Of a stretch of DNA of 64,000 nt, positions 15,360 to 54,885 are shown piece by piece (position 1 is the first letter of the stretch; each line of letters starts with the position of its first letter). The notes under the pieces were generated by a model, which was not told the DNA's origin, made no database searches, and was given only the letters and a program-made list of their open reading frames with translations. The stretch comes from Anaeramoeba ignava BMAN (lineage: Eukaryota; Protista; Anaeramoebae), in NCBI GenBank assembly GCA_028826165.1, contig JAPDFW010000100.1:1-64000 (forward strand), written 5' to 3'. The position numbers and the translations under genes are program-made.

Positions 15360-18300
15360 TTAAAATAAAAAAAAAGTGGAATAAATAAAAATAAATAAAA
15401 ATAAATAAAAATAAATTTGATCAAAAAATAAAAAAGAAATAAAAATAAATATCGATATTTTGCTTGATGGAGTGTTTAAACGGAATAAAGTATATTCTTG
15501 TTCAGTTTTTTCAACTTCATCTTTTATTAATTCCTCAATTAGCTTCTTGAACAAATTATTATGAACAGCTAAATAAGTAACAGCTCTACAAACAGAATCC
15601 ATATCATATACTTTGACAACTTTCAACATCCCACTAATAAATCTTAAACTATCTGCTGTAGTAAAAATCAATTCTTCAAGATCTCGAATCGATTCCATTT
15701 TCTTGGCATTTTCACCTTTAAATTGCAAATTATACAATTTCTCTCCATAAACGTAAGGCCCAAAATCATCAGGAGGAGGTGGTGCTTTTACTTCGTTTTT
15801 CTTTCTTCTCACAACCAAAACCACCAAAACAACAATCAAAACCAATCCAAATCCTCCAACACTTGCTCCAACAGCAATAGGAATCGTGTTGTTTACATTG
15901 TTGCTTGTTGTTTGTTGCGGAACAGAAATCTCATACTTCACCAAATAGAAATCTTCTGGCTTCTCTGTATTCGTCAAATTCACAACCAAATAATCAGTCT
16001 GCGCTCCTTCATTCCCTTCATTCGTTATGATCGTGAAGTTTGCTAATTGCTCATCAATTTCTTTCTTGCTTCCGTTCAACATCTTGTTTTGCGTCTCGTT
16101 GAAACTTGATGATTTCATCTCAAATACTGTTAATGAAAGTCTTATTATAAGTTCTGTTTCGTCAGGATCAAAAATATCAAACGAAATCATGAATTGATTT
16201 CCTTGATAAATGAATTCTTTGTTGTTGTTATTGTTTTCACAATCATCATAGCAAATTGCTTGAATTGTTGATTGATGATAAGTTTTTGTAATATCAAAAA
16301 CAATTGTGAAGTTTTTAACTGCTTCTCCATTCTTCATCATAAAACTCAACTCCAATGGATAGAAATAGTAAAGTGGTGCTCTGATATAAACCAACAAAGG
16401 ATTCGCTTCATTGATTGATGTTCCATCTCCTTTTGTGATTACATCCCCCATAGAAATATCACTGTTGTTTACTCGAATACTTGAATTTGAAATATTCTCT
16501 CCAATCCATACAATTTCCCAAATAGAACTTAAATTTCCTGAAAATAAATCTGTAAATGTGAGATTGATTGGTGAATAATAATCTTCAGTTATGTTCCCTT
16601 CTCCTTTATTCATTTCAAGATTAGATGAATTAAGTTTCAATGTGATTTGATTTGTTCTTGAATATCCACTATCTGATCCTAATGTTAGATTAAAAGAAAT
16701 ATCTGGAGAATTATCATTGTTTTGAGATGTCATAATATAATCAAATGTAATATTTCCTGAATTTGAAGCAGAAGAAATATTAGATGTAATTCCATTCGAA
16801 ACAAGTTTTCCATTATAATAAATGATTCCATTCGTGATAGGTGATGATATTGTGAAATTAATAACATTATTTCCTTTTCCATCTTTATAATCTATCGCAA
16901 AACTTTGATTTTCTAAACTTGATAAATTTAATTCAAAATAAAAAGGATAAAATCCAGGACCTCCTGTTACATTTCTAACATCAATTATCAACTCAGATTG
17001 ATGTTTCCATGATGATTTATAATTCAAATCAACAAAAGTAATTGTATATCCAAACAAACATTGAACACTTTGATTTGGTTGAATTGGAGCTAAAATATTA
17101 ATTTTTGAAGAATTAATCGGCAAAGTATAATTAAGTTTAATTTGATCACCTGAATCTGCTGAATACAAATTACAATAATAATATGAAGAATTTGAATTAT
17201 TTGAAGTTATACTAATTTCATAAATTGAAGAATTTGATAAAAGATAAAAATCATTAAAATCAAATAATGAATATTGACTATCATTTAATGTAAGTGTATT
17301 TCTTGATTGATTAAACCAAGCAGGAATTCCAGCTTCATAATTTCCTTTAATTTCTTCACTTGTTAATATTCTTTCATAACTTCCTACATAATAAACCAAA
17401 TGTTCAAATTGTAGAGTATCTATTGGAAAAACATTTGAAATATTTTTAGAAAGATTTCCAAAACCAATTTTAATATTATTAAGATAAACAGATTGATTTC
17501 CAATTTCCCAATTTACAATTAAATGATAATAATCTCCATTTGATAAATCAGGTGTTAATACTGTAAATTTTGATATAAATGATCCTTGTGAAGAAATTCC
17601 AATTCTAAGAGAAGAAGTATTTGAACCTATTGAAATTACTGGATAATAACTTCCTCTAGAAGATGATTCATCATTAATCAAAATATTATTAGATTGATTA
17701 ATATTTGAAAACCAAATCTCAATTGAAAAAGAAGAAGAATTCAAATTAAGATTAATTGCAGTAGGTGAAGATCCAGTTGAAGATTCAATTCCTTTTTTTT
17801 TTAAAATTAAAATTAAAATTAAAATCAAAATTTAAATTAAAATTAAAATTAAAATTAAAATTAAAATTAAAATCAAAATTAAAATTAAAATTAAAATTAA
17901 AATTAAAATTCAAATTAAAATTAAAATTAAAATTAAAATTAAAATTAAAATTAAAATTCAAATTAAAATCAAAATTAAAATTAAAATTAAAATTAAAAAT
18001 TAAAATTAAAATTAAAATTAAAATTAAAATTAAAATTAAAATCCAAAATTAAAATTAAAATTAAATTAAAATTAAAAATCAAAATTAAATTTAAAATTAA
18101 AATTAAAAATTAAAATTAAAATTAAAATTAAAATTAAAATTAAAATTACCTGTATGAGTAACATTATTTTCAATATACCACCAATTTGTATTTTGATTTG
18201 TAACAGTTACATTTACTTCAGATCCATTAGCAAGAAAACAAGGAATTAAATTTCCAGAATATTGATTTTGAAAAGTAAATGAAAAATTAGAAGGAATTAC

Positions 18301-18387
18301 TCTTGAACAAAATGAATTTGATAAAAGAAAAAAAATAAAACAAATTGAAAAAGAAAAAGAAAAAGAAAAAAGATTAAATTTAATCAT
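15360..18387 (-). CDS. Gene A copy 2: LamG-like single-pass receptor with a truncated RasGAP domain (~889 aa; exons 18387-18150 and 17791-15360)
   Basis: Signal peptide MIKFNLF...SFC and a phase-1 GT-AG intron. LamG-like motifs FSIEIWF, HLIVNW, VYLNN, YERILTSEEI. TM IAVGASVGGFGLVLIVVLVVLVV followed by RRKK. TLFRLNTPSSK is followed by a 32-aa hydrophobic tail and a stop. Confidence 0.88.
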
Positions 18388-19264
18388 TTCTTTTTTTTGA
18401 TTGATTAATTGATTAATTGATTAATTGATTGATTGATTAATTGAAAAATTAAATCAAAAAAAAAAATCCAAAAAAAATTTTTCAAACGAAAAATTAAAAA
18501 AAAAAAAGTGAAAAATCAAAATTAAAAAAAAATTTTTTTTTATTTTAAAAAAATCTCAATAAAAATAAATTAAAAATAAATTAAAAAAAAAAAGCAAATT
18601 TATTTTTAATTTAAATTTGACTTTGATTTTAATTTTAAATTTTAATTTTTAATTTTAATTTTAATTTTAATTTTAAATTTAAATGTGGTTATTTAATCAA
18701 TAAAAATAAAAATAAAAAATCCAAAAAAAAAAATTAAATAAATTTAATAAGGCAAAATAAAAGTAAATTTTAATTTTAATTTTAATTTAAATTTTAAAAT
18801 AAAAAAATAAATTTAAAATTTGATCTCTTTTTTTTTTGATTTTTAAATTAAATTAAATTAAATTAAATTAAATTAAATTAAATTAAATTAAATTAAATTA
18901 AATTAAATTAAATTAAATTAGATTAAATTAAATTAAATCAAAAATAAATTAGATCTGATCTTTTTTCTTTTTTTTTTCTTTTTTTATTTTGATTGTTTGA
19001 ATTATTTTTTTTATTTTTTTTGGATTTAAAATTAAATTAAAAAATAAAAATTAAAAAAGAAAATAAAAAGATTTTTTGTTTTTGTTTTTATTTTTATTTT
19101 TTATTTTTGAAATTCATTCAATTGAAAAAAAGAAAAAGAAAAGAAAAGAAAAAAAAATATTTTCCTTTTTTCTTTTTGATTAATTGATTAATTGATTGAT
19201 TGATTAATTGATTGATTGATTGATTAATTGATTGATTGATTGATTAATTGATTGATTAATTGAT

Positions 19265-21226
19265 TCAGAAAAAAAGAAAAAAAGAAAAAAAGAAAATTGA
19301 AATTGAAATTGAAAGAGAATTGAAAAGAAAAGAAGGTGAATTAGAAAAAGGTGAATTTGGAATTGAGATATTAAGTGTTGCAGTTGTTGAATAATAAATT
19401 GTTGAATTGATTTCTTCATAAATTGAATAATTAATTGTAATTATTGTTTCTTTACCTCCAAGAATATAAATCATTTTGGAATTTTGAGGTAATGTTGAGC
19501 CAGTTTTAATAGTAATATATCCTTCTGAATCTGAATAGAAATTTGCACCATTTGCTTCTAAAATATTCTCAATTAATACAGTGAAATTATATTCTTTTAA
19601 AATACTTTCACATTCAAGTTCAATTCCTTCAATTTTTCCAGTTTCTAAATTTACTTTTTGATTATTAACTTGAAGAAAATTTTGAATTATAATATTTTCA
19701 TTACAATTTGTTGAATTTTTTCCTCTATCATTTGTAACAAAATATGAAAAATTAATTAATTGTTGAGATGAATGATTTAAATTTTCTTCATATTCATAAA
19801 TAACACTCCAATTATCAAAAGATCTATAATCAACAATAGTATCATTTGAAATAATTTTTGAACCTTTAGTTTGATTTGAAAGAATTTGATAAATTGATCC
19901 ATTTAAAGGAATTGAATTAATTATTGCATAAACAAGATTTGAATATTGATCATTTCCAATTAAAGAAATTTGACAAGATTTATCAATATTAATACAATAA
20001 GTTGATAAAGAAGAACAATATGGATTTGGATGATTTATTGAAACATTAAATTGAATTGAATAAGGAGGATTTGGAAATGTTGAAAAATTATTAGTTTTAT
20101 CAAAAAGTGAAATATTCCATTTAGCAATATAAGAATCAAGATCAAGATTTCCTTCAAAAAGAAATTGAGAAGATAAATTAACAATTAATTCTTGTTCAAT
20201 ATAAATCAAATTTGTTTTTATTCCATCAAAAAATGTGTAAATAGATCCATAACCTGGTTCAAAAATATCAATTGTTTTCAATATAAATGTATCATTTGTT
20301 TCATTTGTAAAAGATTCAAGACTAATAATATCTATTTATTTTATTTTCAAAAAAATTATTTTTAATTCAAATTTAAATTCAAATTCCAAATAAAATAAAA
20401 TAAAAAAAAAAAATAAAAAAATACCTTTTAATTGAAAAGTTTTGTTTGTTTGAACATTTAATGAATTAATTAAAATTGATGGAGGAGCAGGAGGTGGTCC
20501 ATTATTAAATCTACTTAAAATATATGAAGATGAAAGTTCACTTCCATAAACTCCTAAATACATAAATCTTGACATTACTTCAATATACATTGATTCAGAT
20601 TGACCTTCAAGAATTGTTAAATAATTATTCCCATCAGAATGAATAATTGAATTAATCAAAGTTCCATTATAATAAGTTGAAAAATTTCCATTTTTTTTAT
20701 AAGTAAAAACAATATGATTTAAGAATCCAAATGATGAAATATTGGAATAAAGAAATTTGTAGTTTTGATTTTGATCAAATATCTTAATTTGAATTTGAGG
20801 AGGAGTGATATCTGTGATAGTATTTACAAAAATTAAATAAGAATTTCCTTCAATCCCAAATAGATTATAAAATGAATTATTTGCAGGAGGTTGAAGAAAC
20901 CAAAATTCAAAAGAAGCTTGCTCAGTATATGAAGTTGAATTTAATCCACATCCTTGAGTTAAATCAGAACAATTACAATATATTGAATTGCTAAAAATAG
21001 GATTAGTTTCAGTCATATTAACACCAGAACTAAAAAGTGAAGGATAAAGCCAATTTCCAGAAACACCAGAGAAAAAAAAAGTTTGATCAGGTAAAGAAGC
21101 AGCAATATCACCTTTTCCTTCATTAAATTTAAATTCAAATTGTTTATTAACTTGAGATAATCTAATTTCAATTAAAAAAATCAAAAAAATAAATTGAAAA
21201 AGATTAAATTTAAAATTATTTGCCAT
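19265..21226 (-). CDS. Gene B copy 2: secreted, probably GPI-anchored LamG/ConA-like surface protein (622 aa; exons 21226-20425 and 20331-19265)
   Basis: Signal peptide and motifs SFEFWF, HIVFTY, YYNGTL, VYGSELSSSYI. A phase-1 GT-AG intron joins the two ORFs in frame (802+1067 nt). An Ig/cadherin-like segment (ISLIGND...SIPLNG...FSYFVTN) precedes a terminal hydrophobic tail with no cytoplasmic residues. Confidence 0.88.
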
Positions 21227-21450
21227 TTTTGTTTTGTTTTGTTTGTTTTGTTTTTTTGATTAATTAAAATTTGTTTTTTGTTTTTGTTTTTGAAAAGAAA
21301 AAAAAAATGGATTTTTTAATTTAAAACATTTTTTTTTTCTTAAAAACTCATTAATTAATTAGTCATTTTATTTTAATTTTAATTTTAATAATATTATTTA
21401 ATATTATTTAATTTAATTAAAAAATATATAAAAAAATGGTAAATTTAATC

Positions 21451-21472
21451 AAATCAAGATCAAATCAAGATC
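21451..21472. promoter_or_regulatory. Direct repeat (AAATCAAGATC)x2 about 230 bp upstream of gene B; candidate cis-element
   Basis: Conserved at ~4676, 21451, 37952 and 55113 amid indel-prone flanks. The function is only inferred. Confidence 0.25.
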
Positions 21473-24400
21473 AAATTTAAAACAAAATTTAAAATTAAAA
21501 ACAAAAACAAAAAAAAATTCAAACAAAAAAAAATTTTTTTTTTCAATATAAAATTTAATTTTGATCAATAAATAAATTAAATAAATTAATTAAATAAAAA
21601 GAAAAATTTATTATTTTAAATTTAATTTTAAATAAAAAAGAAAAGGAAATTAAAATTGCTTTTTTTTTTTGGATTTTATTTTTTTTTTGTTTTGGAAATT
21701 TAAAATTAAAATTAAAATTAAAATTAAAATTAAAATTAAAATTAAAATTAAAATTAAATTTAAAATTAAATTTAAAATTAAAATTAAAATTAAAATTAAA
21801 ATTAAAATTAAAATTAAAATTAAAATTAAAATTAAAATTAAAATTAAAATTAAAATTAAAATTAAAATTAAAAATAAAATTAAAATTAAAATTAAAATTA
21901 AAATTAAATATTATTTCTATTTTTATTATTATTTTAAATTTAATTTATTTTAATTTTTCAAAAATCAAAATCAAAAATCAAAATAATTTAAATTTAAAAA
22001 TTTAAAAATAAAATTAATAAATCTTAATAAAATTAAATTAAATAAAATGATCTATTTTTATTTTTATTTTGATTTTTTTTGCCTAATAAATATTTTAAAT
22101 TTAATTTTAATTTAAATTTTATTTTTGAAATGATGAAAAATTATCCAAATTTTTTTATTTTTAAAAAACAAAAAAAAAGAAAATAATTTATTTTAAAAAT
22201 AAAAAGAAATTAAAATAATAAAAATAATAAATTAAATTTAAATTATTTATTTAAATAATTAAATTAAATAAAATATTTATAAATAATTAATCAAAAATTA
22301 ATCCAAAAAAAAAAGAAGAAAAAAAGAAAAGAAGAAAAAAAATTTATTTTTTTATTTTTAATTAAAATTAATAAATAAATAAATAAAAAAAAACTAAATT
22401 AAAAATATCTTATAATAATAAAATATTTAATAATAAAATAATAAATTAAAATTAATTAATTATTTAATTAATAATCAAAATAATTATTAATTATTTATTT
22501 TTAATTTAATTATTAAAAAATTCTCAAAAAAAAAATTATTTTTTTCTTTCTTTTCAAAATAAAAATAAAAATAAAAATAAAAATAAGAATAAAAATAAAA
22601 ATAATCTTTTTAATAATTATTTTGATTAATTTAATAATTATTTAAAATTAAATTATTATTCCAAAATTTATATTTATTTCTTTTTAATAATTTGGAAAAT
22701 TAATTTAATTTTTTTTTTTATTATTTTTTTGGATTTCAAATTTTTTAAATAAAAAATAAAAAAATAAAAAATAAATTTAATCAAATAAAAATAAATATTT
22801 ATTTTTGTTCCACTTTTTTTTTTGATTATATTTTATTTTTTTTTATTTTAAAAATTAAATAAAAAAATTTGATAAATTAAATAATAAATATTTATTTTAT
22901 TCTTATTAAATTTAAATTTAAAGAAAGAAAGAAAGAAAGAAAGAAAGAAATAAGATAATTAAAATATTAAATAAATTTATTATTTGATTTAATTATTTAT
23001 TATTTATTATTTATTATTTTATTATTGTTTTTGTGATTAAGATTTATAAATTTATTTTTTATTTTTTTTTTGATAAATTTAAAAATAATTTTATTTTCTT
23101 TTTCTTTAATTTTTAAATTTAAATTTCTTTTTATTTATATTATTTTTGATAAGTTTTAATTATTTTATTTAAATAAATTTTATTTTTATTTTTATTTTTA
23201 TTTTCATTATTAAATATCAATTTTTTATTTTTATTTTTTAAATCAAAAAAAAATCAAAAAAAAATAAATAAAAAAAAGGGGAATTAAGAAAATTAAATAA
23301 ATAAATAAAAAAAAAAGGAAATGAAATAATTCTCTTAATTATTTTATTTAAATTTAATTATTTTATTTAAAATAATTATTTTTAAAATTTTTGGAATTTT
23401 TTTTGTTTTTTTTGGAATAAAGATTTTATTTTTTATTTTATAAACAAAAAATAAATAAAAATAAAAAATAAGAATAAAAAAAGAATAAATTGGAATTTTT
23501 TATTATTAATGTTTTTTAAAATTAAAATTTATAAATAAAATAAAATTTCTTAAATTAAAATTTTTTGTTTTTTTTTGTTTTTTTTGAAAATAAATTTAAA
23601 TAAAAATAAAAAGAATTTTAAAAAAAACAAAATTAATTACTTAAATTTTAATTTATTCTTATTTTTTTATTTTTGTTTTTGTTTTTATTGTTTATTTTTT
23701 TTGTAAAAATAAATTTTAAAATTTTTTGATTAAATTTTTTGATTTGGATTTTTTTTAATCTTTAATTAATTAAATAAATAAATAAATTAAAATAAAATTT
23801 AATTTAAAATAATTTAATTTTTGAAAATAAAATAAATTATTAATTATTTTATAAATTAAATCTTTAATTAATTAATTTATTTTTATTCCAAATTTTTTAT
23901 TTTTTATTTTTATTTTGGAATGAAAAAATAAAAAAAATAAAAATAAATTAATCAAAAAAAAATAAATTAAATTAAATTAAATTAAATTAATATTAAATAA
24001 ATAAATTAATTTAAAATAAATATTTAATAAATATTTTAAATTTTAAATTTGATTTTTATTATTTTAATTTTTGATTAAATTTATATTAAAATTAATTAAA
24101 TTATTTTATTAATTATTTAATAAGGAAAATAAATAATTAAATTATATTTTATATTATTAATTTATTTCAAAATAATTTATACATTAAAATTAATAATTAT
24201 ATTATTATTTAAAATTATTTTATTTTGTTTTAGAAATTAAATTAATTAAAATTCAAATTAATATTTTTTTTGATTCCAAATTTATATTTGATTTTAAATC
24301 AATTTTAAATTAATTTAGATAATAAAATCTTTTTATAAATTTTATAAATAAATAATTTTATATTTTAAATAATATTTTCTTTTTATTTTTATTATTTTTA

Positions 24401-24494
24401 TTTTTGGAATTTATATTTAATTTTTTTCATTTTTTTTAATTTAGAAAATAAAAAAAAGTGGAATAAAAAGTGGAATAAAAATGAAATAAAAATA

Positions 24495-25545
24495 TTTTAA
24501 AATTATTTTTAATTAAATTTATTATAAAATAATAAATAAATTATAATTAAAAATTAAGTAAAATAATAAATAAAATATTTTAATTAATTTATTTAATTAA
24601 TTTTAATAATAATAATTTAATAATAATAATAAATTCATTTTTAAAATTATTTCTTAATTAAATTTATTACAAAATAATAAATAAATTATAATTAAAAAAT
24701 CAAGTAAAATAATAAATAAAATATTTTAATAAATTTATTTAATTATTTTTAATAATAATAATTTAATATTAATAATAAATTCATTTTTAAAATTATTTCT
24801 TAATTAAATTTATTATAAAATAATAAATAAATTATAATTAAAAATCAAATAAAAATAATAAATAAAATATTTTAATTAATTTATTTAATTATTTTTAATA
24901 ATAATAATTTAATAATAATAATAAATTCATTTTTAAAATTATTTCTTAATTAAATTTATTACAAAATAATAAATAAATTATAATTAAAAATTAAATAAAA
25001 TAATAAATAAAATATTTTTAATAAATTTATTTAATTAATATTAATAATAATAATTTAATATTAATAATAAATTCATTTTTAAAATTATTTCTTAATTAAA
25101 TTTATTACAAAATAATAAATAAATTATAATTAAAAATTAAATAAAATAATAAATAAAATATTTTAATAAATTTATTTAATTAATTTTAATAATAATAATT
25201 TAATATTAATAATAAATTCATTTTTAAAATTATTTTTAATTAAATTTATTATAAAATAATAAATAAATTATAATTAAAAATTAAATAGAATAATAAATAA
25301 AATATTTTAATTAATTTAATTAATTAATTTTAATAATAATAATTTAATATTAATAATAAATTCATTTTTAAAATTATTTCTTAATTAAATTTATTACAAA
25401 ATAATAAATAAATTATAATTAAAAATTAAATAAAATAATAAATAAAATATTTTAATTAATTTAATTAATTATTTTTAATAATAATAATTTAATAATAATA
25501 ATAAATTCATTTTTAAAATTATTTTTTAATTAAATTTATTAATTT
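24495..25545. repeat. ~145-bp tandem repeat, 7 units
   Basis: ttcattttt landmarks at 24634, 24780, 24926, 25072, 25217, 25361 and 25506. Confidence 0.92.
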
Positions 25546-28500
25546 ATTTTTAATAATTAAATTAAGAAATAAAAAGGATTTTTTGTTGATTAAAATAATT
25601 TTTGTTTTTTTTTGTTTTTAAGAAATAAATAAATAAATAAAGAAATAAAATTAATTTTATTTTCAATTTTTCCAATTTCTTTTTTATTTTTATTTTATTT
25701 ATTATTTTATTTAGAATTAAATTGTGAAAAATAAAGAAAAGAAGAAAGAAAATTAATTTTTTTTTCTTTTTGGGAATATTTTTTGTTTTGTTATTTTAAA
25801 TTAAGAAGAAAAAAGAAAAAAAGAATTAAAATTAAAAATTGTTTTTGTTTTTATTTTTGTTTTAATTTAATAAATAATTTCAAATTTAATTTATTATTTT
25901 GTAATAAATTTAATTAAAAATAATTTAATTTATTTATTTATTTATTTATTTCTAAAATTAATTAATTAATTAAATAATTAATATTTCTCTTTTTTATTTA
26001 TTTTTATTTTTATTTTTATTTTTAAATTTGGAAAATAAATTTAAATTGATTTATGTTTATTTTCTTTTTGATTTTTTGATTTTTTGGATTTTTTGGAAAT
26101 TAAAAAATTTTGAATAAGTAAATAAATAATTAAATAATTTATTCTTCTTTCTTTCTTTTCTTTCTTTTTCTAAAATATTCTTTCAATTAAAATAATAATA
26201 ATTTAAATTTATTTGAATAAATTAATAAATATAATTTAATTTATGTAAAAAAAAACAAAAGAGAAATTATTATTTTTATTTTTATTTTTATTTTTGAAAT
26301 TATTTAAAAAAAAATATTTAGAGAATAAGATAAATTAAGAGAAAATTTATAAAATGAAATAATTTATAAATAAAATATTATTTAAATTTAATTTAAAATT
26401 TATTTATAATTTAATTAAATAAAATGAAAGAAATTATTCTTAATTATTCTTTTTTTTCAATAATAATTAAGAAATAATAAATAATAAAAACTTATAAATT
26501 AGAACTTTTTTGTTTTTTTATTTGTTTCTTTCTTTTGATTATTTATCAAAACAAAAATATAATTTTTTTTTCTAAATTCAAATCTTTTAAAAAAAAGAAA
26601 AAATTTTTTTTGTATATTTAAAATTTATATTAATTTTTGAATATAAAAATTAAGAATATAAATTTGAAAATTATTTATATTCTTTATATAAAATAAAATT
26701 TATTTAATTAATAATTTATTCTTATTCTTAAAATTATTATTTTATATTTAAAAACAATTTTAACAAATTTTTTCTTTTTTTATAATTTAAATTTTATTTA
26801 TTCTTTTTCTAATTTTTTTTTCTTTTCAATTTCTTGAATTAAAATTTATTTTATTTTATTTTATTTTATTATAAATTAATTAATAATTTTAATTATTTTT
26901 TTTCAATTTAATCTTATTTTTATATTTGAAAATTATTATTTCTGATTATTAAATTATTTATATTATTTTAATTAAATTCAAAATCTTCTTCTTCTTCTTT
27001 TCTTTTTTCATAATTTGAATTATTTCAAATTTTTTCTTCAATTAAATTTTAATTATTTTCTTTTAAATAATTTTTTTTTTTCTAAATTAATTAGAAACAA
27101 AACAAAACAAAACAAAACAAAACAAAACAAATTTATTTATTTATATTTATATTTATATTTATATTAAAGATAATTAAAAAATAAATAAAAGAAATAAGAA
27201 GATACAAAATATGAAATATAATCACAATATTTAATGTAAAATATTATCTTAGAAAATAAATAATATTTAATTTGAAAAATAAAAATAAACAATAAATAAG
27301 TTTTTGATATGAAATTTACAAGAAATCTAAAAATATCTTTAATTATTCCAAATAAAATAAATAATAATTCTCTCTAAAAAAAAAAGAAATTAAATTATTT
27401 TCAAAAAAAAAAAAAGAATTTAAGAAAGATTTATAGATAAAAATAATTATTAAAAATATTTATTAATTAATTAAATAAAAATAATTTATAAAATATAAGA
27501 AAAATCAAAATCAAAATCAAAAAAAAAAGAATTTTATTTATTTATTTTTATTGTAAATATAATAATAATAAATAAGAAATTTAAATAATAAAATAAAATA
27601 TAAATTATATTCAAAGAAATAAATAAAGAAGAATTCTTTAATTTTATTTATAAATTTTTATTTATAATAAACATAAAAAAAATTAATTAAATAAAATAAA
27701 ATAACAAGAAAATATTATTAGAAAAAAAAGTAAAATTGATTTCAAAATAATATTTTTGAAATTATATTATTATTTATTATTTAAATATTAAGAGAATAAA
27801 ATTCTTGAAAATGAAGAAAATTAAATAATTATAGAAAGAAAATCAAGTTAATAATATAAATAATTAGAAGAAACAAAATAATCATAAATAATAAAATTAA
27901 AATTAATTCCAAAATAATCAATTAGAAACAAAATAAATAAATAAATAAATTTAAATTATGAAAATTAAATAAAATCAAAATCAAAAACTTAATAATATTA
28001 GAAAATAAAAAAATAAAGAATATAAATAATTAATTCAAAAAGAAAAAGAAAAATAAGAAAATTTTTAATATAAATCAATTTTATAATTAAAATTAAATTC
28101 AAAATTATTGAAAAAAAAGGAGAATTTAAATATAAGATAAATTAAATTCTTTTTTTTCTTTTTTTTTGAAATTTATAATTTAGAAAATTATTATTAATAA
28201 TAAAATAAGAATTAATAATTTAAGAGATATAAATTTCTTAATTTTATTTTGTTTTTATTTTAAACAAATATAAATAAAAATAAAAATAATTTTAAATAAT
28301 ATTTTTCAAATAAATTAAAATCAAAAATTTAAATTTAAATTTAATTTATTTTTCTTTGATTTAAATTTGATAAAATAAACATTAAATTATTTTCAAAAAA
28401 AAAAAGAATTTAATTTTCTTTTTTTTTCTTTTTCTTTTCAAAATTATCAAAATAAGGAAATATAATTAAGAAGAAAAATATCAAGAATAAATTTATTTAA

Positions 28501-29424
28501 GAAATTAAATTAATTTAAATTAAATAAAATAAAATAAAATTAATTATTTTAGAAAAGATATATTAATATCAAGAATAAGTTTATTTTTTAATTAATTTTA
28601 ATATAAATAATTTAAATTTTGATAATTTAAAAATGAATAAAAAATAAATAATATTTTTTTTTCAAAAGAAGAATAAATAATATTTTTTATTTTATTTTCT
28701 TATTTTCCTTATAAAAAAAAAAACAAATAAATGAATAATAAATTTTCTCCTTAAAAAAAAAAAAGATAAAAAAATCAAAAATTAACACAATAAAATCTTC
28801 TTTTTAAAATTTCAAAATTTCAAAAATTCAAAATAATTAATAAATTGAAATAATAATAAAATTTTCAATTAAAAAACAAAAAAATAAAAATAAATATGTA
28901 TTCTCTTTAATTTCATAAAAATATAAAATTATTCAAAAAAAAAATATTCTTTTATTCAATAAATAAATGAAAATAAATTTAAAATATAAAATTTATTTAT
29001 TTATTTAAATTATATTTGAAATATTTAATTAAAAAGAAAAAAAAGAAAAATATTATTATAAAAATATAAATTAAAAATCCAAAAATTCAAAAATTCAAAA
29101 TTAAATTTAAATATAAATTAAAAAGAAGAAAATATTTCTAAAAAAATTTGGAAAATTTAAATAAATAATTTGAAAAAAAAAGAAGAAAGAAAAGAAATTA
29201 ATAAGAATAATTAAATAAATCAAGAGAAAAAAAAGAAATGAAAATAAAAATATTTTTACTTTCCAATTTAATTTAATTTAATTTAAAAATAAAAATATTT
29301 ACAAATAATAAATAAGATAAATATGAATAAATAAGATAAATATTGATAAATTATTTCTAAAAATCAAAATTTTTTGTAAAAATATTTTTATTTTATTCAA
29401 AAAGAAAAAAAAATTTATTAATTA

Positions 29425-29870
29425 AATCAATAATATAAAATGATATCAATTAATGAATATATTTTATAAATATTTATTTATATTAATTAAATAATTTATT
29501 AATTAAATAATAATATAATTTTGTTTTTAATTTTTTTTAAATTTTTGAAAATAAATTAAATATTTTATATTTATTAATAAAATAAAATAAAATAAAATAA
29601 ATCAATAATAAATAAATAATATAAAATGATATCAATTAATAAATATATTTTATAAATATTTATTTATATTTATTAAATAATTTATTAATTAAATAATAAT
29701 ATAATTTTGTTTTAATTTTTTTTAAATTTTTGAAAATAAATTAAATATTTTATAATTATCAATAAATAAAATAAATAAATCAATAATAAATAAATAATAT
29801 AAAATGATATCAATTAATGAATATATTTTATGAATATTTATAAATATTTATTAAATAATTTATTAATTTA
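29425..29870. repeat. ~180-bp tandem repeat: 3 cores here, 2 in the other units
   Basis: aatataaaatgatatcaattaat... recurs at ~29432, 29618 and 29797. Pairs occur at ~12552/12733, 46098/46276 and 62626/62805. Confidence 0.85.
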
Positions 29871-30240
29871 TTTTACATTTAAAATTGAAAAAAAAGAATA
29901 AGAATGAAAATATTAATAAATTTAAAAATATTGGAAATGAGAATAAAAATAAACTATTATAAACAAAGAATTAAATTAAAAATAAAAATAAAAGTGATAA
30001 ATTTCAAAATTTGAAATGATAAATAATTTTTTTTTGATTAATTTATTCTTAATATTCCTTAAAGAAGATATTTACAATCTAATAAAAAAAAACCAAAAAT
30101 AAAAATAAAAATAAAAATAAAAATAAAAATAAAAATAAAAATAAAAATAAAAGAAGATTTGATTTTGTTTTTTTTTAATTTAAAATAATTTTATTTAATA
30201 AAAAAAAAGAAAAAAAAATAATTAGAATTGTTTTATATTC

Positions 30241-31150
30241 CAAATTAAAATCAAAATTAAAATTAAATTAAATCAAAATTAAATCAAAATCAAAATCAAA
30301 ATCAAATCAAAATTAAATCAAAATTAAATCAAAATTAAATCAAAATTAAAATTAAAATTAAATCAAAATTAAAATTAAAATTAAATTAAATTAAATCAAA
30401 TCAAAATTAAAATTAAAATCAAATCAAATTAAATTAAATCAAAATCAAAATTAAATTAAAATTAAATCAAATCAAAATTAAATCAAAATCAAAATTAAAT
30501 TAAATTAAATTAAAATCAAATCAAAATTAAATCAAAATTAAATCAAAATTAAATCAAAATCAAAATCAAAATAAATTAAATCAAAATTAAATCAAAATTA
30601 AATTAAAATTAAATCAAAATTAAATCAAAATTAAATCAAATCAAAATTAAATCAAAATCAAAATTAAATTAAATTAAATTAAAATCAAATCAAAATTAAA
30701 TCAAAATTAAATCAAAATTAAAATTAAATCAAAATTAAATCAAAATTAAATTAAATCAAAATTAAATCAAAATTAAATCAAATCAAAATCAAAATTAAAT
30801 CAAAATTAAATTAAATCAAAATTAAATTAAATCAAAATTAAATTAAATCAAAATTAAATTAAATTAAATTAAATCAAAATTAAATTAAATCAAAATCAAA
30901 TTAAAATTAAATCAAAATTAAATTAAATCAAAATTAAATCAAAATTAAATCAAATCAAAATCAAATTAAAATTAAATCAAAATCAAAATCAAATCAAAAT
31001 TAAATCAAAATTAAATTAAATCAAAATTAAATTAAATTAAAATTAAATTAAATCAAAATTAAATCAAATTAAATCAAAATTAAAATTAAATCAAAATTAA
31101 ATTAAATTAAATTAAATCAAATTAAATCAAAATTAAATTAAATTAAATTA
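30241..31150. repeat. Compound AAAT(T/C) microsatellite at the unit boundary
   Basis: About 900 bp of mixed AAATT, AAAATT, AAATC and AAAATC. Confidence 0.93.
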
Positions 31151-31701
31151 AAAAATATTTCCCAAAAAGAAAAAATTAATTATTTCTTTTATTTTTTTTA
31201 TTTAATTATTTATATTTTTTTTGATTAAATTTAAGAAATAAAAAAGATGAAAAGAAAAAAAAAACCAAAAATTTAATTTTGATTTTTATTTTGAAATTAT
31301 TATTTATTTTTGATAATTTAAATTAAAAATTTTTTTTTAAAATTAAATTAAAAAATAATCAATTCAAAATTTTTATTAAAAAAATAAAAATAAAAAAAAA
31401 GGAATAAATTTAAAATTTGAAATTTTGAAATTTTAATAATTTAATTTTATTTATAAATTTTTGAATTTTTATAATTTTTAAGAATAAATTAATAAAACAA
31501 AACAAAATAATTTTAATTTTAATTTTAATTTTTCTTTCCATTTTTTTTTAAAAATAAAAATTAAAAAAGATTAAAAAAAGAAAAAAAAAGGAATTTGATT
31601 TATTTTTATTCAATTTAAATTAAACAATTAAAATTTAATTTTTCAAATAAATAAAAAAATATTAAATATTAAAATAAATAAAATAAATAATCAATGTCAA
31701 T

Positions 31702-34700: not shown

Positions 34701-34858
34701 GCAAGAAAACAAGGAATTAAATTTCCAGAATATTGATTTTGAAAAGTAAATGAAAAATTAGAAGGAATTACTCTTGAACAAAATGAATTTGATAAAAGAA
34801 AAAAAATAAAACAAATTGAAAAAGAAAAAGAAAAAGAAAAAAGATTAAATTTAATCAT
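31702..34858 (-). CDS. Gene A copy 3: LamG-like single-pass receptor with a truncated RasGAP domain (~889 aa; exons 34858-34621 and 34133-31702)
   Basis: Same exon lengths as copy 2 (238+2432 nt). Same truncation after TLFRLNSPSSK. Different residues in the LamG variable patches. Confidence 0.88.
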
Positions 34859-35788
34859 TTCTTTTTTTTGATTGATTAATTGATTGATTAATTGATTAAT
34901 TGAAAAATTAAATCAAAAAAAATCCAAAAAAATTTTTCAAATGAAAAATTAAAAAAAAAAAAGTGAAAAATCAAAATTAAAAAAAAATTTTTTTTTATTT
35001 TAAAAAAATCTCAATAAAAATAAATTAAAAATAAATTAAAAAAAAAAAGCAAATTTATTTTTAATTTAAATTTGACTTTGATTTTAATTTTAAATTTTAA
35101 TTTTAATTTAAATGTGGTTTTTAATCAATAAAATAAAAATAAAAAATCCAAAAAAAAAAATTAAATAAAATTAAAATAAGGCAAAATAAAAATCCAAAAA
35201 TTTTTAATTTAAATTTTTAATTTAAAATAAAAATAAATTTAAAATTTGATCTCTTTTTGATTTTTAAATTAAATTAAAAAATAAATTAAATTAAAAAATT
35301 TAAATTAAATTAAAATAAATTAAATTTTGAATTAAATTAAATTAAATTAAATTAAATTAAATTAAATTAAATTAAATTAAATTAAATTAAATTAAATTAG
35401 ATTAAATTAAATTAAATTAAATAAAATTAAAATCAAATTAAATTAAAATTAAATTAAATTAGATCTGATCTTTTTTCTTTTTTTTTTCTTTTTTTATTTT
35501 GATTGTTTGAATTATTTTTATTTTTTTATTTTTTTTGGATTTAAAATTAAATTAAAAATTAAAAATTAAAAAGAAAATAAAAAGATTTTTTGTTTTTGTT
35601 TTTGTTTTTATTTTTTATTTTTGAAATTCATTCAATTGAAAAAAAGAAAAAGAAAAAGAAAAGAAAAGAAAAAAAAATATTTTCCTTTTTTCTTTTTGAT
35701 TGATTAATTGATTGATTAATTAATTAATTGATTGATTAATTGATTGATTGATTGATTGATTAATTGATTAATTGATTGATTAATTGAT

Positions 35789-40700: not shown

Positions 40701-40919
40701 CCAAATTTATATTTGATTTTTAAATCAATTTTAAATTAATTTAGATAATAAAATCTTTTTATAAATTTTATAAATAAATAATTTTATATTTTAAATAATA
40801 TTTTCTTTTTATTTTTATTATTTTTATTTTTGGAATTTATATTTAATTTTTTCATTTTTTTTTAATTTAGAAAATAAAAAGTGGAATAAAAAGTGGAATA
40901 AAAATGAAATAAAAAATAT

Positions 40920-47856: not shown

Positions 47857-48208
47857 AAAAATATTTCCCAAAAAGAAAAAATTAATTATTTCTTTTATTT
47901 TTTTTATTTAATTATTTATATTTTTGATTAAATTTAAGAAATAAAAAAGATGAAAAGAAAAAAAACAAATTTAATTTTGATTTTTATTTTGAAATTATTA
48001 TTTATTTTTGATAATTTAAATTAAAATTTTTAAAATTAATAAAAATAATCAATTCAAAATTTTTATTAAAAATAAAAATAAAAAGGAATAAATTTTAAAT
48101 TTTGAATTTTGAAATTTTAATAATTTAATTTTATTTATAAATTTTTGAATTTTTATAATTTTTAAGAATAAATTAATAAAACAAAACAAAATAATTTTAA
48201 TTTTAATT

Positions 48209-51200
48209 TTAATTTTTCTTTCCATTTTTTTTAAAAACAAAAATTAAAAAGATTAAAAAGAAAAAGGAATTTGATTTATTTTTATTCAATGCTAATGCAA
48301 CTTTGTTTTGAGAAATAAATCGATGAAGTATTGCAAGAGAAACATCTCGAACATTTTGAGGAATTTCATGTCTCATTTCAATGTTTTCCAACAAATTAGA
48401 CTTTTCAACTTTAGAAAGAATACATTCAAAGAACTTGAAATTTTTGTTAAAAAAAAAATAAATTTAATTAAAAATAATGAATAAAAAATAAATAATAATA
48501 ATAAAGAAAAATTAAATTAGATTACTGTGTGAAAATTATCATTATTTTTTTTAATAAAAGCAGTGGAATTGATCAACGATTCTTCTTTAAAAGATGATCC
48601 ATTTAAAGAATTTTGAATGAATTTTGAAACGAGTGTTAAGATTTTCCTTTTTGTATCTTGAATTTGTGAGTCGTGTTCTGTTTCTAGTAAAATTCCAAAA
48701 CTTGAATGAGCTAGAATTGCCGGACAGAAAAATCTCAAAAATAAAAATCCACCCATCGCAAAATATCCACTATTTCCATTAAATTTAGAATTGCAAGACT
48801 TGTTCAACAAATAACAAATATACTTAAATTGATTAGGCATTTCTCCAATTTCAAAAATTTTAGTCAAAAACTCCTGTGCAAGTGACTCAATTTTGGATAT
48901 ATTTTCGGATAGAGTTGATTGAGCAACCAAATCAACTTGGAGATCGAAATTGTCTTCCAAATTATCATCCAAATTATCATCCAAATTATCATCCAAATTA
49001 TCATCCAAATTATCATCCAAATTATCTTTCAACTTATTGGGATTTCTAGATTCCAAAATTAGTTTTTTATCTAATATAATGTTGTCATATTTTTCCGAGG
49101 TGTAAACTTCAAAGATTTTACCAGCTAATATGGTATACAAATAAGGTAATCCAATGATTTTTGCATAAAAGCTCAATATTTTGCTTGATGGACTGTTTAA
49201 ACGGAATAAAGTAGATTCTTGTTCAGTTTTTTCAACTTCATCTTTTATTAATTCCTCAATTAGCTTCTTGAACAAATTATTATGAACAGCTAAATAAGTA
49301 ACAGCTCTACAAACAGAATCCATATCATATACTTTGACAACTTTCAACATCCCACTAATAAATCTTAAACTATCTGCTGTAGTAAAAATCAATTCTTCAA
49401 GATCTCGAATCGATTCCATTTTCTTGGCATTTTCACCTTTAAATTGCAAATTATACAATTTCTCTCCATAAACGTAAGGCCCAAAATCATCAGGAGGAGG
49501 TGGTGCTTTTACTTCGTTTTTCTTTCTTCTCACAACCAAAACCACCAAAACAACAATCAAAACCAATCCAAATCCTCCAACACTTGCTCCAACAGCAATA
49601 GGAATCGTGTTGTTTACATTGTTGCTTGTTGTTTGTTGCGGAACAGAAATCTCATACTTCACCAAATAGAAATCTTCTGGCTTCTCTGTATTCGTCAAAT
49701 TCACAACCAAATAATCAGTCTGCGCTCCTTCATTCCCTTCATTCGTTATGATCGTGAAGTTTGCTAATTGCTCATCAATTTCCTTCTTGCTTCCGTTCAA
49801 CATCTTGTTTTGCGTCTCGTTGAAACTTGATGATTTCATCTCAAATACTGTTAATGAAAGTCTTATTATAAGTTCTGTTTCGTCAGGATCAAAAATATCA
49901 AACGAAATCATGAATTGGTTTCCTTGATAAATGAATTCTTTGTTGTTATTGTTGTTTTCACAATCATCATAGCAAATTGCTTGAATTGTTGATTGATGAT
50001 AAGTTTTTGTAATATCAAAAACAATTGTGAAGTTTTTAACTGCTTCTCCATTCTTCATCATAAAACTCAACTCCAATGGATAAAAATAGTAAAGTGGTGC
50101 TCTGATATAAACCAACAAAGGATTCGCTTCATTGATTGATGTTCCATCTCCTTTTGTGATTACATCCCCCAATAGAAATATCACTGTTGTTTACTCGAAT
50201 ACTTGAATTTGAAATGTTCTCTCCAATCCATACAATTTCCCAAATAGAACTTAAATTTCCTGAAAATAAATCTGTAAATGTGAGATTGATTGGTGAATAA
50301 TCATCTTCAGTTATGTTCCCTTCTCCTTTATTCATTTCAAGATTAGATGAATTAAGTTTCAATGTGATTTGATTTGTTCTTGAATATCCACTATCTGATC
50401 CTAATGTTAGATTAAAAGAAATATCTGGAGAATTATCATTGTTTTGAGATGTCATAATATAATCAAATGTAAGATTTCCTGAATTTGAAGCAGAAGAAAT
50501 ATTAGATGTAATCCCATTCGAAACAAGTTTTCCATTATAATAAATGATTCCATTCGTGATAGGTGATGATATTGTGAAATTAATAACATTATTTCCTTTT
50601 CCATCTTTATAATCTATCGCAAAACTTTGATTTTCTAAACTTGATAAATTTAATTCAAAATAAAAAGGATAAAATCCAGGACCTCCTGTTACATTTCTAA
50701 CATCAATTATCAACTTAGATTGGTGTTTCCATGATGATTTATAATTCAAATCAACAAAAGTAATTGTATATCCAAACAAACATTGAACACTTTGATTTGG
50801 TTGAATTGGAGCTAAAATATTAATTTTTGAAGAATTAATTGGCAAAGTATAATTAAGTTTAATTTGATCACCTGAATCTGCTGAATACAAATTACAATAA
50901 TAATATGAAGAATTTGAATTATTTGAAGTTATACTAATTTCATAAATTGAAGAATTTGATAAAAGATAAAAATCACTAAAATCAAATAATGAATATTGAC
51001 TATCATTTAATGTAAGTGTATTTCTTGATTGATTAAACCAAGCAGGAATTCCAGCTTCATAATTTCCTTTAATTTCTTCACTTGTTAATATTCTTTCATA
51101 ACTTCCTACATAATAAACCAAATGTTCAAATTGTAAAGTATCCATTGGAAAAACATTTGAAATATTTTGAGAAAGATTTCCAAAACCAATTTTAATATTA

Positions 51201-51990
51201 TTAAGATAAACAGATTGATTTCCAATTTCCCAATTTACAATTAAATGATAATAATCTCCATTTGATAAATCAGGTGTTAATACTGTAAAATTTTCAACTG
51301 GAGAATAACCTTGATAAATTTGAATCAAAAGAGAAGAAGTATTTGAACCTATTGAAATTACTGGATAATAAGATTGAGTTGAAAAAGAAGATGGTTTGCC
51401 ATTAATCAAAACATTATTAGATTGATTAATATTTGAAAACCAAATCTCAATTGAAAAAGAAGAAGAACTCAAATTAAGATTAATTGCAGTATATGTTGAT
51501 GGATTATTTGAAGATTCAATTCCTTTTTTTTTTAAAATTAAAATTAAAATTAAAATTAAAATTTAAATTAAAATTAAAATTAAAATTAAAATTAAAATTA
51601 AAATTAAAATTAAAATTAAAATTAAAATTAAAATTAAAATTAAAATTAAAATTAAAATTAAAATTAAAATTAAAATTAAAATTAAAATCCAAAAAAATAA
51701 GAGAAAAATTTGGAAAAAAAAAATTTAAATTTAAAATTAAAATTAAAATTACCTGTATGAGCAACATTATTTTCAATATACCACCAATTTGTATTTTGAG
51801 TTGAAATACTTACATTTACTTCAGATCCATCAGCAAGAAAACAAGGAATTAAATTTCCAGAATATTGATTTTGAAAAGTAAATGAAACATTAGAAGGAAT
51901 TACTCTTGAACAAAATGAATTTGATAAAAGAAAAAAAATAAAACAAATTGAAAAAGAAAAAGAAAAAGAAAAAAGATTAAATTTAATCAT
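48209..51990 (-). CDS. Gene A copy 4: full-length LamG-like transmembrane RasGAP receptor (~1150 aa; exons 51990-51753, 51522-48526 and 48433-48209), with a +1 frameshift at ~50170 that is probably an artefact
   Basis: RasGAP signatures TLFRLNSPSSK (arginine finger), GGFLFLRFFCPAI (FLR motif), LVSKFIQN and FKEE. A phase-0 intron at 48525-48434 gives NFHT|FFECIL. The ectodomain and TM match copies 2 and 3. The exact C-terminus is uncertain. Confidence 0.88.
48957..49026 (-). repeat. 12-bp coding tandem repeat encoding (LDDN)n inside the RasGAP domain
   Basis: About 5 copies of ccaaattatcat; the translation reads KDNLDDNLDDNLDDNLDDNLDDNLEDNF. Confidence 0.92.
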
Positions 51991-52934
51991 TTCTTTTTTT
52001 TGTTTGATTGATTAATTGATTAATTGATTAATTGAAAAATTAAATCAAAAAAAAAATCCAAAAAAAATTTTTCAAATGAAAAATTAAAAAAAAAAAAGTG
52101 AAAAATCAAAATTAAAAAAAATTTTTTTTTATTTTAAAAAAATCTCAATAAAAATAAATTAAAAATAAATTAAAAAATAAAAAAGCAAATTTATTTTTAA
52201 TTTAAATTTGACTTTGATTTTAATTTTTAATTTTAATTTTAATTTTAATTTTAATTTTAAATTTAAATGTGGTTATTTAATCAATAAAATAAAAAATAAA
52301 ATAAATCCAAAAAAAAAAATTAAATAAAATTAATAAGGCAAAATAAAAGTAAATTTTAATTTTAAATTTTTAATTTTAAATTTTAAAATAAAAAAATTAA
52401 ATTTAAAATTTGATCTCTTTTTGATTTTTAAATTAAAAATTAAATAAATTAAATTTAAATTAAATTAAAATTAAATTAAATTAAATCAAAATTAAATTAA
52501 ATCAAAATTAAATTAAAATAAATTAAATTAAATTAAATTAAATTAAATTAAATTAAATTAAATTAAATTAAATTAAATTAAATTAAATTAAATTAAATTA
52601 AATTAAATTAGATCTGATCTTTTTTCTTTTTTTTTTTCTTTTTTTATTTTGATTGTTTGAATTATTTTTTTATTTATTTTTTTTGGATTTAAAATTAAAT
52701 TAAAAATTAAAATTTAAAAATTAAAAAAGAAAATAAAAAGATTTTTTGTTTTTGTTTTTGTTTTTTGTTTTTGTTTTGAAATTCATTCAATTGAAAAAAA
52801 GAAAAAGAAAAGAAAAGAAAAGAAAAAAAAATATTTTCCTTTTTTCTTTTTGATTGATTGATTAATTGATTGATTGCTTGATTGATTAATTGATTGATTA
52901 ATTGATTGATTAATTGATTGATTAATTGATTGAT

Positions 52935-54885
52935 TCAGAAAAAAAGAAGAAAAGAAAAAAAGAAAATTGAAATTGAAATTGAGAGAGAATTGAAAAGAAA
53001 AGAAGGTGAATTAGAAAAAGGTGAATTTGGAATTGAGATATTAAGTGTTGCAGTTGTTGAATAATAAATTGTTGAATTAATTTCTTCATAAATTGAATAA
53101 TTAATTGTAATTATTGTTTCTTTACCTCCAAGAATATAAATCATTTTAGAATTTTGAGGTAATGTTGAGCCAGTTTTAATAGTAATATATCCTTCTGAAT
53201 CTGAATAGAAATTTGCACCATTTGCTTCTAAAATATTCTCAATTATTACAGTGAAATTATATTGTTTTAAAATACTTTCACATTCAAGTTCAATTCCTTC
53301 AATTTTTCCAGTTTCTAAATTTACTTTTTGATTATTAACTTGAAGAAAATTTTGAATTATAATATTTTCATTACAATTTGTTGAATTTTTTCCTCTATTA
53401 TTTGTAACAAAATATGAAAAATTAATTAATTGTTGAGATGAATGATTTAAATTTTCTTCATATTCATAAATAACACTCCAATTATCAAAAGATCTATAAT
53501 CAACAATAGTATCATTTGAAATAATTTTTGAACCTTTAGTTTGATTTGAAAGAATTTGATAAATTGATCCATTTAAAGGAATTGAATTAATTATTGCATT
53601 ATCAAGATTTGAATATTGATCATTTCCAATTAAAGAAATTTGACAAGATTTATCAATATTAATACAATAAGTTGATAAAGAAGAACAATATGGATTTGGA
53701 GGATTGATTGAAACATTAAATTGAATTGAATAAGGAGGATTTGGAAATGTTGAAAAATTATTAGTTTTATCAAAAAGTGAAATATTCCATTTAGTAATAT
53801 AAGAATCTTGATAAAGATTTCCTTCAAAAAGAAATTGAGAAGATAAATTAACATTTAATTCTTGTTCATTATAAATCAAATTTGTTTTTATTCCATCAAA
53901 AAATGTGTAAATAGATCCATAATTTAGATCAAAAATATTAATTGTTTTCAATATAAATGTATCATTTGTTTCATTTGTAAAAGATTCAAGACTAATAATA
54001 TCTATTTATTTTATTTTTCAAAAAATTTATTTTTAATTCAAATTCAAATTCAAATTCCAAAAAAATAAAAAATAAAAAAATACCTTTTAATTGAAAAGTT
54101 TTGTTTGTTTGAATATTTAATGAATTAATTAAAATTGATGGAGGAGCAGGAGGTGGTCCATTATTAAATCTACTTAAAATATATGAAGATGAAAGTTCAC
54201 TTCCATAAACTCCTAAATACATAAATCTTGTGAATATAGCAACAGTTGTTAATTCAGCTTCATTTTGAGTCATTGTTAAATAATTATTCCCATCAGAATG
54301 AATAATTGAATTAATCAAAGTTCCATTATAATAAGTTGAAAAATTTCCATTTTTTTTATAAGTAAAAACAATATGATTTAAGAATCCAAATGATGAAATA
54401 TTGGAATAAAGAACTTTTGGGTTTTGATTTTGATCAAAAATAGCAATTTGAATTTGAGGAGGAGATTGAGATGTATCAGTTGTTGCTACAAAAAACCAAT
54501 CTCCTGAAAGAATTTGAAATAGAGTATAAATTGATTGATTTGCAGGAGGTTGAAGAAACCAAAATTCAAAAGAAGCTTGCTCAGTATATGAAGTTGAATT
54601 TAATCCACATCCTTGAGTTAAATCAGAACAATTACAATATATGAAATTAGATTGAAGAACATTAGTTTGAGTCATATTAACACCAGAACTAAAAAGTGAA
54701 GGATAAAGCCAATTTCCAGAAACACCAGAGAAAAAGAAAGTTTGATCAGGTAAAGAAGCAGCAATATCACCTTTTCCTTCATTAAATTTAAATTCAAATT
54801 GTTTATTAACTTGAGATAATCTAATTTCAATTAAAAAAATCAAAAAAATAAATTGAAAAAGATTAAATTTAAAATTATTTGCCAT
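52935..54885 (-). CDS. Gene B copy 4: LamG-like, probably GPI-anchored surface protein (622 aa; exons 54885-54084 and 54001-52935)
   Basis: Intact frame (802+1067 nt) with the same architecture as copy 2. Confidence 0.88.

Follow-up and report, generated by a model that had tools for sequence, protein, structure and literature searches.

In this study, we analyzed a 64,000-nucleotide stretch of the genome of the metamonad amoeba Anaeramoeba ignava BMAN (positions 1 to 64,000 of contig JAPDFW010000100.1, assembly GCA_028826165.1; hereafter, the window), which carries a tandem array of two adjacent genes designated A and B. Gene A encodes a putative receptor with an N-terminal LamG-like domain and, in its complete form, a cytoplasmic RasGAP domain, and gene B encodes a LamG-containing protein without a cytoplasmic part. 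Three B-then-A units lie on the minus strand at 15360–21226, 31702–37736, and 48291–54885 with a period of 16.3–17.1 kb, and more copies surround them. The tandem two-gene array proposed in an earlier interpretation of the letters alone (the sequence-only reading) is thus borne out, and the gene arrangement gives good support to the proposed functional pairing of A and B. Our best reading, to which we give slightly less than even confidence, is that the pair serves self or kin recognition and dampens Ras at cell contacts.

Linkage of A and B at three loci

In the A. ignava genome, B-type genes were found only in the array and on contig C74. The C74 gene (B′; 219752–222844, minus strand) is 33–40% identical to the array B genes and is arranged tail-to-tail with, and within ~4 kb of, A′ (match at 213203–216007, plus strand), a full receptor with LamG, transmembrane (TM), and RasGAP parts and a 32% identical ectodomain. 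A′ is also present in EukProt, which, from the nature of that collection, is likely to indicate transcriptome evidence. Among database proteins, the closest to the A′ tail is a receptor of A. flamelloides (47% identity), which has a collinear A-type ectodomain and an intron at the matching position; A′ is in turn its best match in the A. ignava genome (E-value of 4e-89). The ectodomain of A. flamelloides A alone gave no match in the A. ignava genome, and its homology is indicated by profile matches (E-values of 2e-8 and 3e-4) together with the common intron position.

In both sequenced A. flamelloides strains, an unannotated gene is located head-to-head with A, with ~550 bp between the start codons. 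It aligns with B over 520 residues (22% identity; E-value of 5e-8, and 1e-10 in another comparison) and retrieves only the array B genes across the A. ignava genome (E-value of 4e-7). A. flamelloides B lacks a hydrophobic tail and is therefore probably secreted. Each strain has a single pair, a two-member cluster. Orthologues of the two species share 37.3% identity on average (PMC11550330). A′/B′ is the probable orthologue of this pair in A. ignava, and the array is probably a faster-evolving paralogue.

The linkage of A and B takes a different orientation at each of the three loci, being head-to-tail in the array, tail-to-tail on C74, and head-to-head in A. flamelloides. Each B-type gene found (array, C74, and both A. 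flamelloides strains) adjoins, or shares an array with, an A-type RasGAP receptor. Because this linkage survives rearrangement, A and B appear to work together. Among the relatives with genomic sequence, partner genes were found for the A type only; two other receptor RasGAPs of A. flamelloides have no B-type neighbor. Three A-type ectodomain genes without TM and RasGAP parts, two in tandem on contig C56 (223600–228650) and one on C58 (292200–294100), likewise have no B neighbor. Two of them end like glycosylphosphatidylinositol (GPI)-anchored proteins and one apparently does not, and all three could serve as decoys or additional ligands. Both the terminal array A and A. flamelloides A are followed by an RCC1-BTB gene (L040:2–835 and L051:21629–25160, respectively), although this gene family may be too numerous for the shared neighbor to demonstrate synteny.

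Domains of A and B and layout of the array

The A product contains, in order, a signal peptide, a LamG-like domain, a beta-rich stalk, a single TM segment, a proline motif, and the RasGAP domain. Its N-terminus matched Pfam Laminin_G_3 with an E-value of 9e-5, short of the curated cut-off, and the distant matches of the A family profile, among those scanned, are Laminin_G_3 proteins. Modeled with AlphaFold, the first 318 residues form a jelly-roll with a mean predicted local distance difference test (pLDDT) score of 67, roughly 65–96 in the core. The nearest folds are sialidase lectin/CBM40 modules and pentraxins (Z-scores of 12.8–13.1), including NanB (Z-score of 13.1 and root-mean-square deviation of 3.2 over 149 residues). 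Jelly-rolls of clostridial neurotoxin binding domains filled the Foldseek list at 10–16% identity; only the fold is shared, which gives no sign of kinship with these toxins.

The B product consists of a signal peptide, LamG, cadherin/immunoglobulin (Ig)-like repeats, and a hydrophobic end without a cytoplasmic part. Its C-terminus resembles a GPI signal, with a hydrophobic stretch after small residues, as judged by eye and hydropathy without a predictor. B itself had no match in Pfam, and a single-sequence structure model was too poor for use (pLDDT of 34). The jelly-roll assignment of B is based on the Pfam LamG match of its paralogue B′ (E-value of 7e-9) and on an Atlas feature search, which indicated LamG and cadherin/Ig features (0.93). 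A search of metagenome contigs found no relatives of B. Between the LamG domains of A and B, BLASTP found nothing, and a profile-profile comparison gave an E-value of 1e-4, so that the fold is common to both and the sequence barely. The related N-terminal LamG-like domains described in the sequence-only reading were therefore recovered in both proteins, as remote relatives only.

That reading also took gene A to encode a TM segment plus a RasGAP domain throughout. In the window, this description fits only A3, whose RasGAP domain gave an unbroken match to PF00616 (1–204 of 207); in the whole array, the copy ending on contig C120 also has RasGAP. A1, A2, and A4 end just after the arginine finger, and thus the idea that every A copy is a signaling receptor was ruled out (3/5 copies cut). 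The arginine finger and FLR motif of the array RasGAP align with NF1 (E-value of 7e-17), and both catalytic motifs are present in A3, the C120 copy, A′, and A. flamelloides A. The array RasGAP forms a very long branch in a quick-search RasGAP tree, which does not settle its placement. It contains an insert of an acidic four-residue repeat (48950–49030), with six copies in A3 and five in the C120 copy. The truncation pattern suggests tandem duplications with breakpoints in the 3′ end of A, the terminal copy retaining the native end; most inner A copies would be GAP-dead because these breakpoints cut the 3′ end.

All genes of the window array are on the minus strand, and the annotated gene models concur with the array reading. 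A1 (M0811_11326, 889 aa; 15360–18387) encodes a signal peptide, LamG, an Ig-like stalk, and a TM segment from 15884, has an intron at 17792–18149, and is truncated just past the arginine finger at ~15456. Its hypervariable blocks 1–4 are located at approximately 17409–17777, and a fifth block is in exon 1 (~18184–18207). B1 (M0811_11327, 622 aa; 19265–21226; intron 20332–20424) has the signal peptide, LamG, cadherin/Ig-like repeats, and hydrophobic C-terminus, with hypervariable blocks 1–4 at approximately 20567–21016. In the second unit, A2 (M0811_11328, 889 aa; 31702–34858; intron 34134–34620) is truncated like A1, and B2 (M0811_11329; 35789–37736) has a 4-nt gap near 36198 that breaks the frame in the assembly. 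In the third unit, A3 (48291–51990; introns 51523–51752 and 48434–48525) comprises LamG, the stalk, a TM segment from 49605, and RasGAP, with the arginine finger at ~49206 and FLR at ~48741. It contains an extra G at 50166–50170 and is cut at a second junction at 48291, ~32 residues short of the natural end. B3 (M0811_11331, 622 aa; 52935–54885; intron 54002–54083) is intact. The A. ignava assembly was produced from nanopore reads and then polished (PMC11550330), and the extra G in A3 and the gap in B2 may be nanopore errors. In sequence comparisons, frameshifts were masked with N, and spliced genes were searched exon by exon or as database proteins.

A noisy fourth B-A unit is located at 1–4469, and further copies lie past the window end. 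At the error-rich contig start, the 5′ part of A0 (1–1571) has a signal peptide and a LamG of the A2 type and probably continues on C120; B0 (2530–4469) is also error-rich. An A that lacks its 5′ third but has a complete tail lies at the end of C120, facing the A0 fragment in the right orientation, with ~130–156 nt missing between the two pieces. The single complete A copy thus appears to be the terminal one, split over the contig gap. Beyond the window, contig C101 carries A4 and B4, followed by B5 and B6. The array totals at least seven B and at least five A genes, a count that leaves out 72–80 kb and 84–88 kb of C101, and extra units could sit inside the C120–C101 gap. Every unit has a non-coding spacer of ~10.4 kb (21250–31613 between B1 and A2; GC 4–11%) that begins at the A-cutting junction, and its copies are 88–94% identical across kb-long stretches. 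This spacer is absent before the first B, because a Gln/Asn-rich open reading frame (ORF) is located only ~0.7 kb upstream of B6 (L006:3074–3766; C101 ~90.7–91.4 kb). A tRNA scan of the whole window found no genes. A non-autonomous DNA transposon at 13567–14748 has Tc1/mariner-like ends, with terminal inverted repeats bordered by TA on each side and subterminal repeats of 21 nt; it carries a captured gene-like fragment and has ~7 genome copies of 0.94–1.2 kb.

Variation of the LamG domains

The A/B locus is syntenic in the two A. flamelloides strains, with ~97% DNA identity over 21 kb and the same neighbors. The A alleles differ at 59 of 1135 residues, and 38 of the differences are in the 145-residue LamG core (p = 6e-22). 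The proportion of nonsynonymous differences (pN) is 0.135 in LamG versus 0.005 in the cytoplasmic part, and few changes occur in the TM and cytoplasmic parts. In exon 2 of B, the alleles differ at 26 of 660 residues, including 17 in LamG (17/183; p = 5e-5), 12 of which are in one 50-residue stretch aligning with array blocks 2–3. DNA divergence in the locus peaks at 38 changes per 300 nt, compared with a typical 2–12, and the flanking RCC1-BTB gene differs at 9/580. A ~1.6-kb insertion is present in the first intron of A in one strain only (L051:11034–12970). The polymorphism of both LamG tips between strains therefore suggests that something selects for difference. Because the symbionts of the two strains are 99.7% identical (PMC11550330), symbiont change is an unlikely driver.

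A LamG-like receptor RasGAP without a partner served as a control. It showed mild enrichment, with 7 of 162 LamG residues differing (p = 0.008), and the polymorphism of A LamG is well above this level (p = 3e-8). Exposed tips of surface receptors often evolve in such a fashion. Together with the mild enrichment in the unpaired control and the synonymous divergence, which is also raised in the variable blocks, this favors an ordinary conserved ligand-receptor pair, giving a semaphorin-plexin-like contact or density signal, whose variable face is driven by an attaching parasite or virus. However, this explanation requires that the corresponding face of both partners be attacked in two distantly related species, and such an arms race does not by itself explain the tight linkage in three orientations. 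We therefore regard this explanation as improbable.

Within the array, variable columns are concentrated in LamG both in A (45/212 versus 13/621 in the rest; p = 6e-18) and in B (59/226 versus 30/353; p = 3e-8). The sequence-only reading had described the stalk, TM, and juxtamembrane regions as near-identical, but the B stalk is also mildly variable between copies. The LamG variation is packed into four to five short blocks in both genes. The blocks have pN values of 0.13–0.45 and mostly have proportions of synonymous differences (pS) of 0.09–0.35, in contrast to 0.005–0.006 and 0–0.003, respectively, in the LamG framework; therefore, the blocks are old or fast-changing segments within a framework under homogenization. 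They retain frame and length. The closest copy switches from one block to the next, as in B0, in which blocks 1–3 are nearest to B4 and block 4 is nearest to B2. Approximately half of the informative site pairs of B do not fit a single tree, and in A each of the three possible partitions occurs. The blocks are thus shuffled, by gene conversion or recurrent change. In the predicted strands, variable positions take turns with invariant isoleucines and therefore face one exposed side, which, considering the fold, may be the concave ligand face.

The array could instead be a selectively unimportant by-product, or partly mis-assembled, with relaxed sites as blocks. Most A copies are truncated, two frameshifts and a noisy end are present in a nanopore assembly (PMC11550330), and ω (the nonsynonymous to synonymous rate ratio) is not above 1 (see below). 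However, the preserved frame and length of the blocks, the difference in pS between blocks and framework, and the divergence peak at LamG between the alleles of another species all argue against it. We consider this the least probable of the explanations weighed here, and for the pair it is already largely refuted.

Candidate roles of the pair and known systems

In the self-recognition reading, A would be a single-pass receptor with a neurofibromin-like RasGAP as its cytoplasmic part, and B would be an extracellular partner dedicated to it, of GPI type in A. ignava and apparently secreted in A. flamelloides. The two genes would be inherited together, and of the two polymorphic LamG tips, one would be a self tag and the other would read it. 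On contact with a matching B, presented or released most simply by a clone-mate, the GAP of A would be clustered or activated, and local Ras-GTP would fall. Protrusions and cups would then cease to form at that spot, as a do-not-engulf-kin signal or as contact inhibition. The feeding cups of Dictyostelium are built by local Ras activity and restricted by NF1, which inhibits Ras locally (PMC4374526); for this reason, a receptor GAP engaged by matching B would be expected to quench protrusion at the contact. In A. ignava, the pair would have been amplified in tandem, with gene conversion evening the framework and shuffling the variable blocks. The array may then represent a multi-tag haplotype and a conversion reservoir of new specificities for one or two signaling copies, and the truncated A copies would be decoys or pseudogenes. 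We infer the binding between A and B, its allele specificity, the direction of GAP regulation, and the cellular outcome. The intact catalytic motifs suggest that engagement would switch Ras off, as the sequence-only reading proposed.

Several observations weigh either against this reading or against a strict lock and key in each unit. A1, A2, and A4 keep only the finger, and their coding regions end five residues past the finger motif and run into spacer DNA. B lies upstream of A in the three clean units of the window, as the sequence-only reading stated for every unit, but B5 and B6 are orphan B genes without any A. The distances among A and B copies are not correlated over four clean units (Mantel r = −0.29, p = 0.79), a comparison of very low power. 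An A2-type LamG is found beside two different B genes, in unit 2 and in the noisy unit 0, where A0 has the four blocks of A2 and yet adjoins a mostly B4-like B (noisy sequence). With this lack of co-variation, the orphan B genes, and the loss of GAP in most A copies, the claim that each unit is its own lock and key finds no support. Simple counting gave ω values of 1.5–1.6, but codon-frequency-aware likelihood estimates are 0.6–0.8 domain-wide, not above 1, and 0.22 in the A stalk and juxtamembrane part. Because the bootstrap ranges of the domain-wide values include 1, positive selection is suggested but not demonstrated. The B LamG polymorphism (17/183) is not significantly above the control (7/162; p = 0.09), and two A. 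flamelloides strains are too few for assessing allele co-variation. The nearest folds of A LamG include glycan-binding modules, and we found no reports of social or cannibalistic behavior of Anaeramoeba in the searched literature.

Because no A-B co-variation was observed inside the array, the parasite arms race stays viable, as does a cis co-receptor for a foreign ligand (prey, parasite, virus, or symbiont). In the latter explanation, B would capture or co-bind the ligand in the manner of CD14/MD-2 or neuropilin, the site would be made up of both variable faces, and the array would broaden the range recognized. Blocks of A and B mix freely, without co-variation, as would be expected of a repertoire more than of fixed pairs; numerous variants are present within one genome, and the A fold is nearest to CBM40 sialic-acid modules and pentraxins. 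A cis co-receptor also explains the linkage equally well. However, the single pair in each A. flamelloides strain would be a poor repertoire, the symbionts barely differ between these strains, and a RasGAP output would damp uptake rather than trigger it. We judge the co-receptor unlikely, although it is the foremost of the rivals.

A mating-type or gamete-compatibility pair, in which a self match inhibits and a mismatch permits fusion, would have a similar genomic signature, because self-incompatibility loci also combine a linked polymorphic receptor and ligand. Anaeramoebae have been characterized as amoeboflagellates, hence with other life stages. Seven or more B copies are nevertheless hard to reconcile with a simple mating type, and this explanation is very unlikely.

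Returning to self-recognition, we propose the following fuller statement with somewhat more reserve. The locus would be a self-recognition locus of a solitary free-living metamonad amoeba, in which a polymorphic LamG tag is read by a polymorphic LamG receptor wired to RasGAP. It would predate the divergence of two species whose proteins are on average 37% identical, would combine convergent Tgr-like genetics with plexin-like signaling, and would be the most firmly anchored member of a class of protist receptor GAPs, distinct from plexins, that has not been described. Among protists, molecular recognition of self or kin is known chiefly in social amoebae. If true, the linked polymorphic pair would add Metamonada, and with it an organism without a known multicellular stage, and would bear on why such loci remain polymorphic and how phagotrophs avoid eating their kin. 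The two natural alleles of each gene in cultured strains put cognate versus non-cognate binding within direct reach.

The system shares several features with TgrB1/TgrC1. The receptor and partner genes are adjacent, head-to-head in A. flamelloides as in Tgr and in other orientations in A. ignava, and have polymorphic outer domains, which, in the two strains, vary above background strongly for A and more weakly for B. Both systems form clusters with orphans, broken copies, partner excess, and gene conversion (PMC13648343); the tgr clusters have ~3x more ligand-like than receptor-like sequences. Moreover, the Tgr pathway is linked to a Ras-family GAP, RapGAPB (PMC12142906). In contrast, Tgr proteins are Ig-like/IPT and both span the membrane, whereas the A-B pair has variable LamG domains, a B without a cytoplasmic part, and a GAP fused to A. 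No TIG/IPT match was found in A or B with Pfam, nor any homology to the Tgr family. To our knowledge, Anaeramoeba has no multicellular stage. The Tgr-like recognition suggested by the sequence-only reading is thus supported by the strain polymorphism of both LamG domains; no A-B co-variation was seen among the four clean array units, at very low power.

With semaphorin-plexin, the pair shares a single-pass receptor with an intracellular RasGAP (A3, A′, and A. flamelloides A). The semaphorin ligand is secreted, GPI-anchored, or TM, and has an N-terminal fold in common with its receptor (PMC8011033). Neither A nor B has a Pfam match to the Sema domain, the N-terminal fold of A being a jelly-roll, and PSI is likewise not present. 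Unlike the plexin GAP, the GAP of A is not split by a Rho-binding domain and has only the short acidic repeat insert. We know of no linked allele-polymorphic pairs among plexins and semaphorins, and plexins are the sole receptor GAPs that we know of or found in the searched literature.

Neurofibromin, with which the finger and FLR align, and p120-type RasGAPs are soluble, whereas here the domain is a receptor tail. The domain order places A in an architectural class of unsplit TM-RasGAP receptors, which consist of an ectodomain, one TM segment, and an unsplit RasGAP and occur in Anaeramoeba and Amoebozoa (Cavostelium, Soliformovum, Paramoeba, and Rhizamoeba; EukProt). Their ectodomains are of FN3, EGF, IPT, cadherin-like, and LamG types, and at least one of these receptors has a faint LamG match. 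Transcriptome proteins of amoebozoan or unassigned origin with this layout and LamG/IPT/EGF/cadherin-like ectodomains are P0053, P0055, P0058, P0059, P0062, and P0064. The whole genome of A. ignava gave 140 RasGAP matches, which are not copy numbers (loci L025, L026, L030, L032, and L034). In several long RasGAP ORFs, a TM segment precedes the finger by ~120 residues, which points to a broader family of receptor RasGAPs with different ectodomains, and three tandem RasGAP genes with a ~650-aa open frame are located at C93:357000–368500. We found no papers on this class in a literature search that left out most subscription journals, and the unsplit receptor RasGAPs are possibly an ancient, undescribed receptor class.

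Brassica SRK/SCR follows the same logic of a linked polymorphic receptor and ligand, and CD47-SIRPalpha gives an inhibitory self signal against engulfment. They differ from A-B in their kinase or phosphatase output and in their unrelated domains. The A-type proteins, in Anaeramoeba and several amoebozoans, have the plexin layout built from other parts. Overall, the pair resembles tgrB1/tgrC1 in its genetics and semaphorin-plexin in its layout, with homology to neither.

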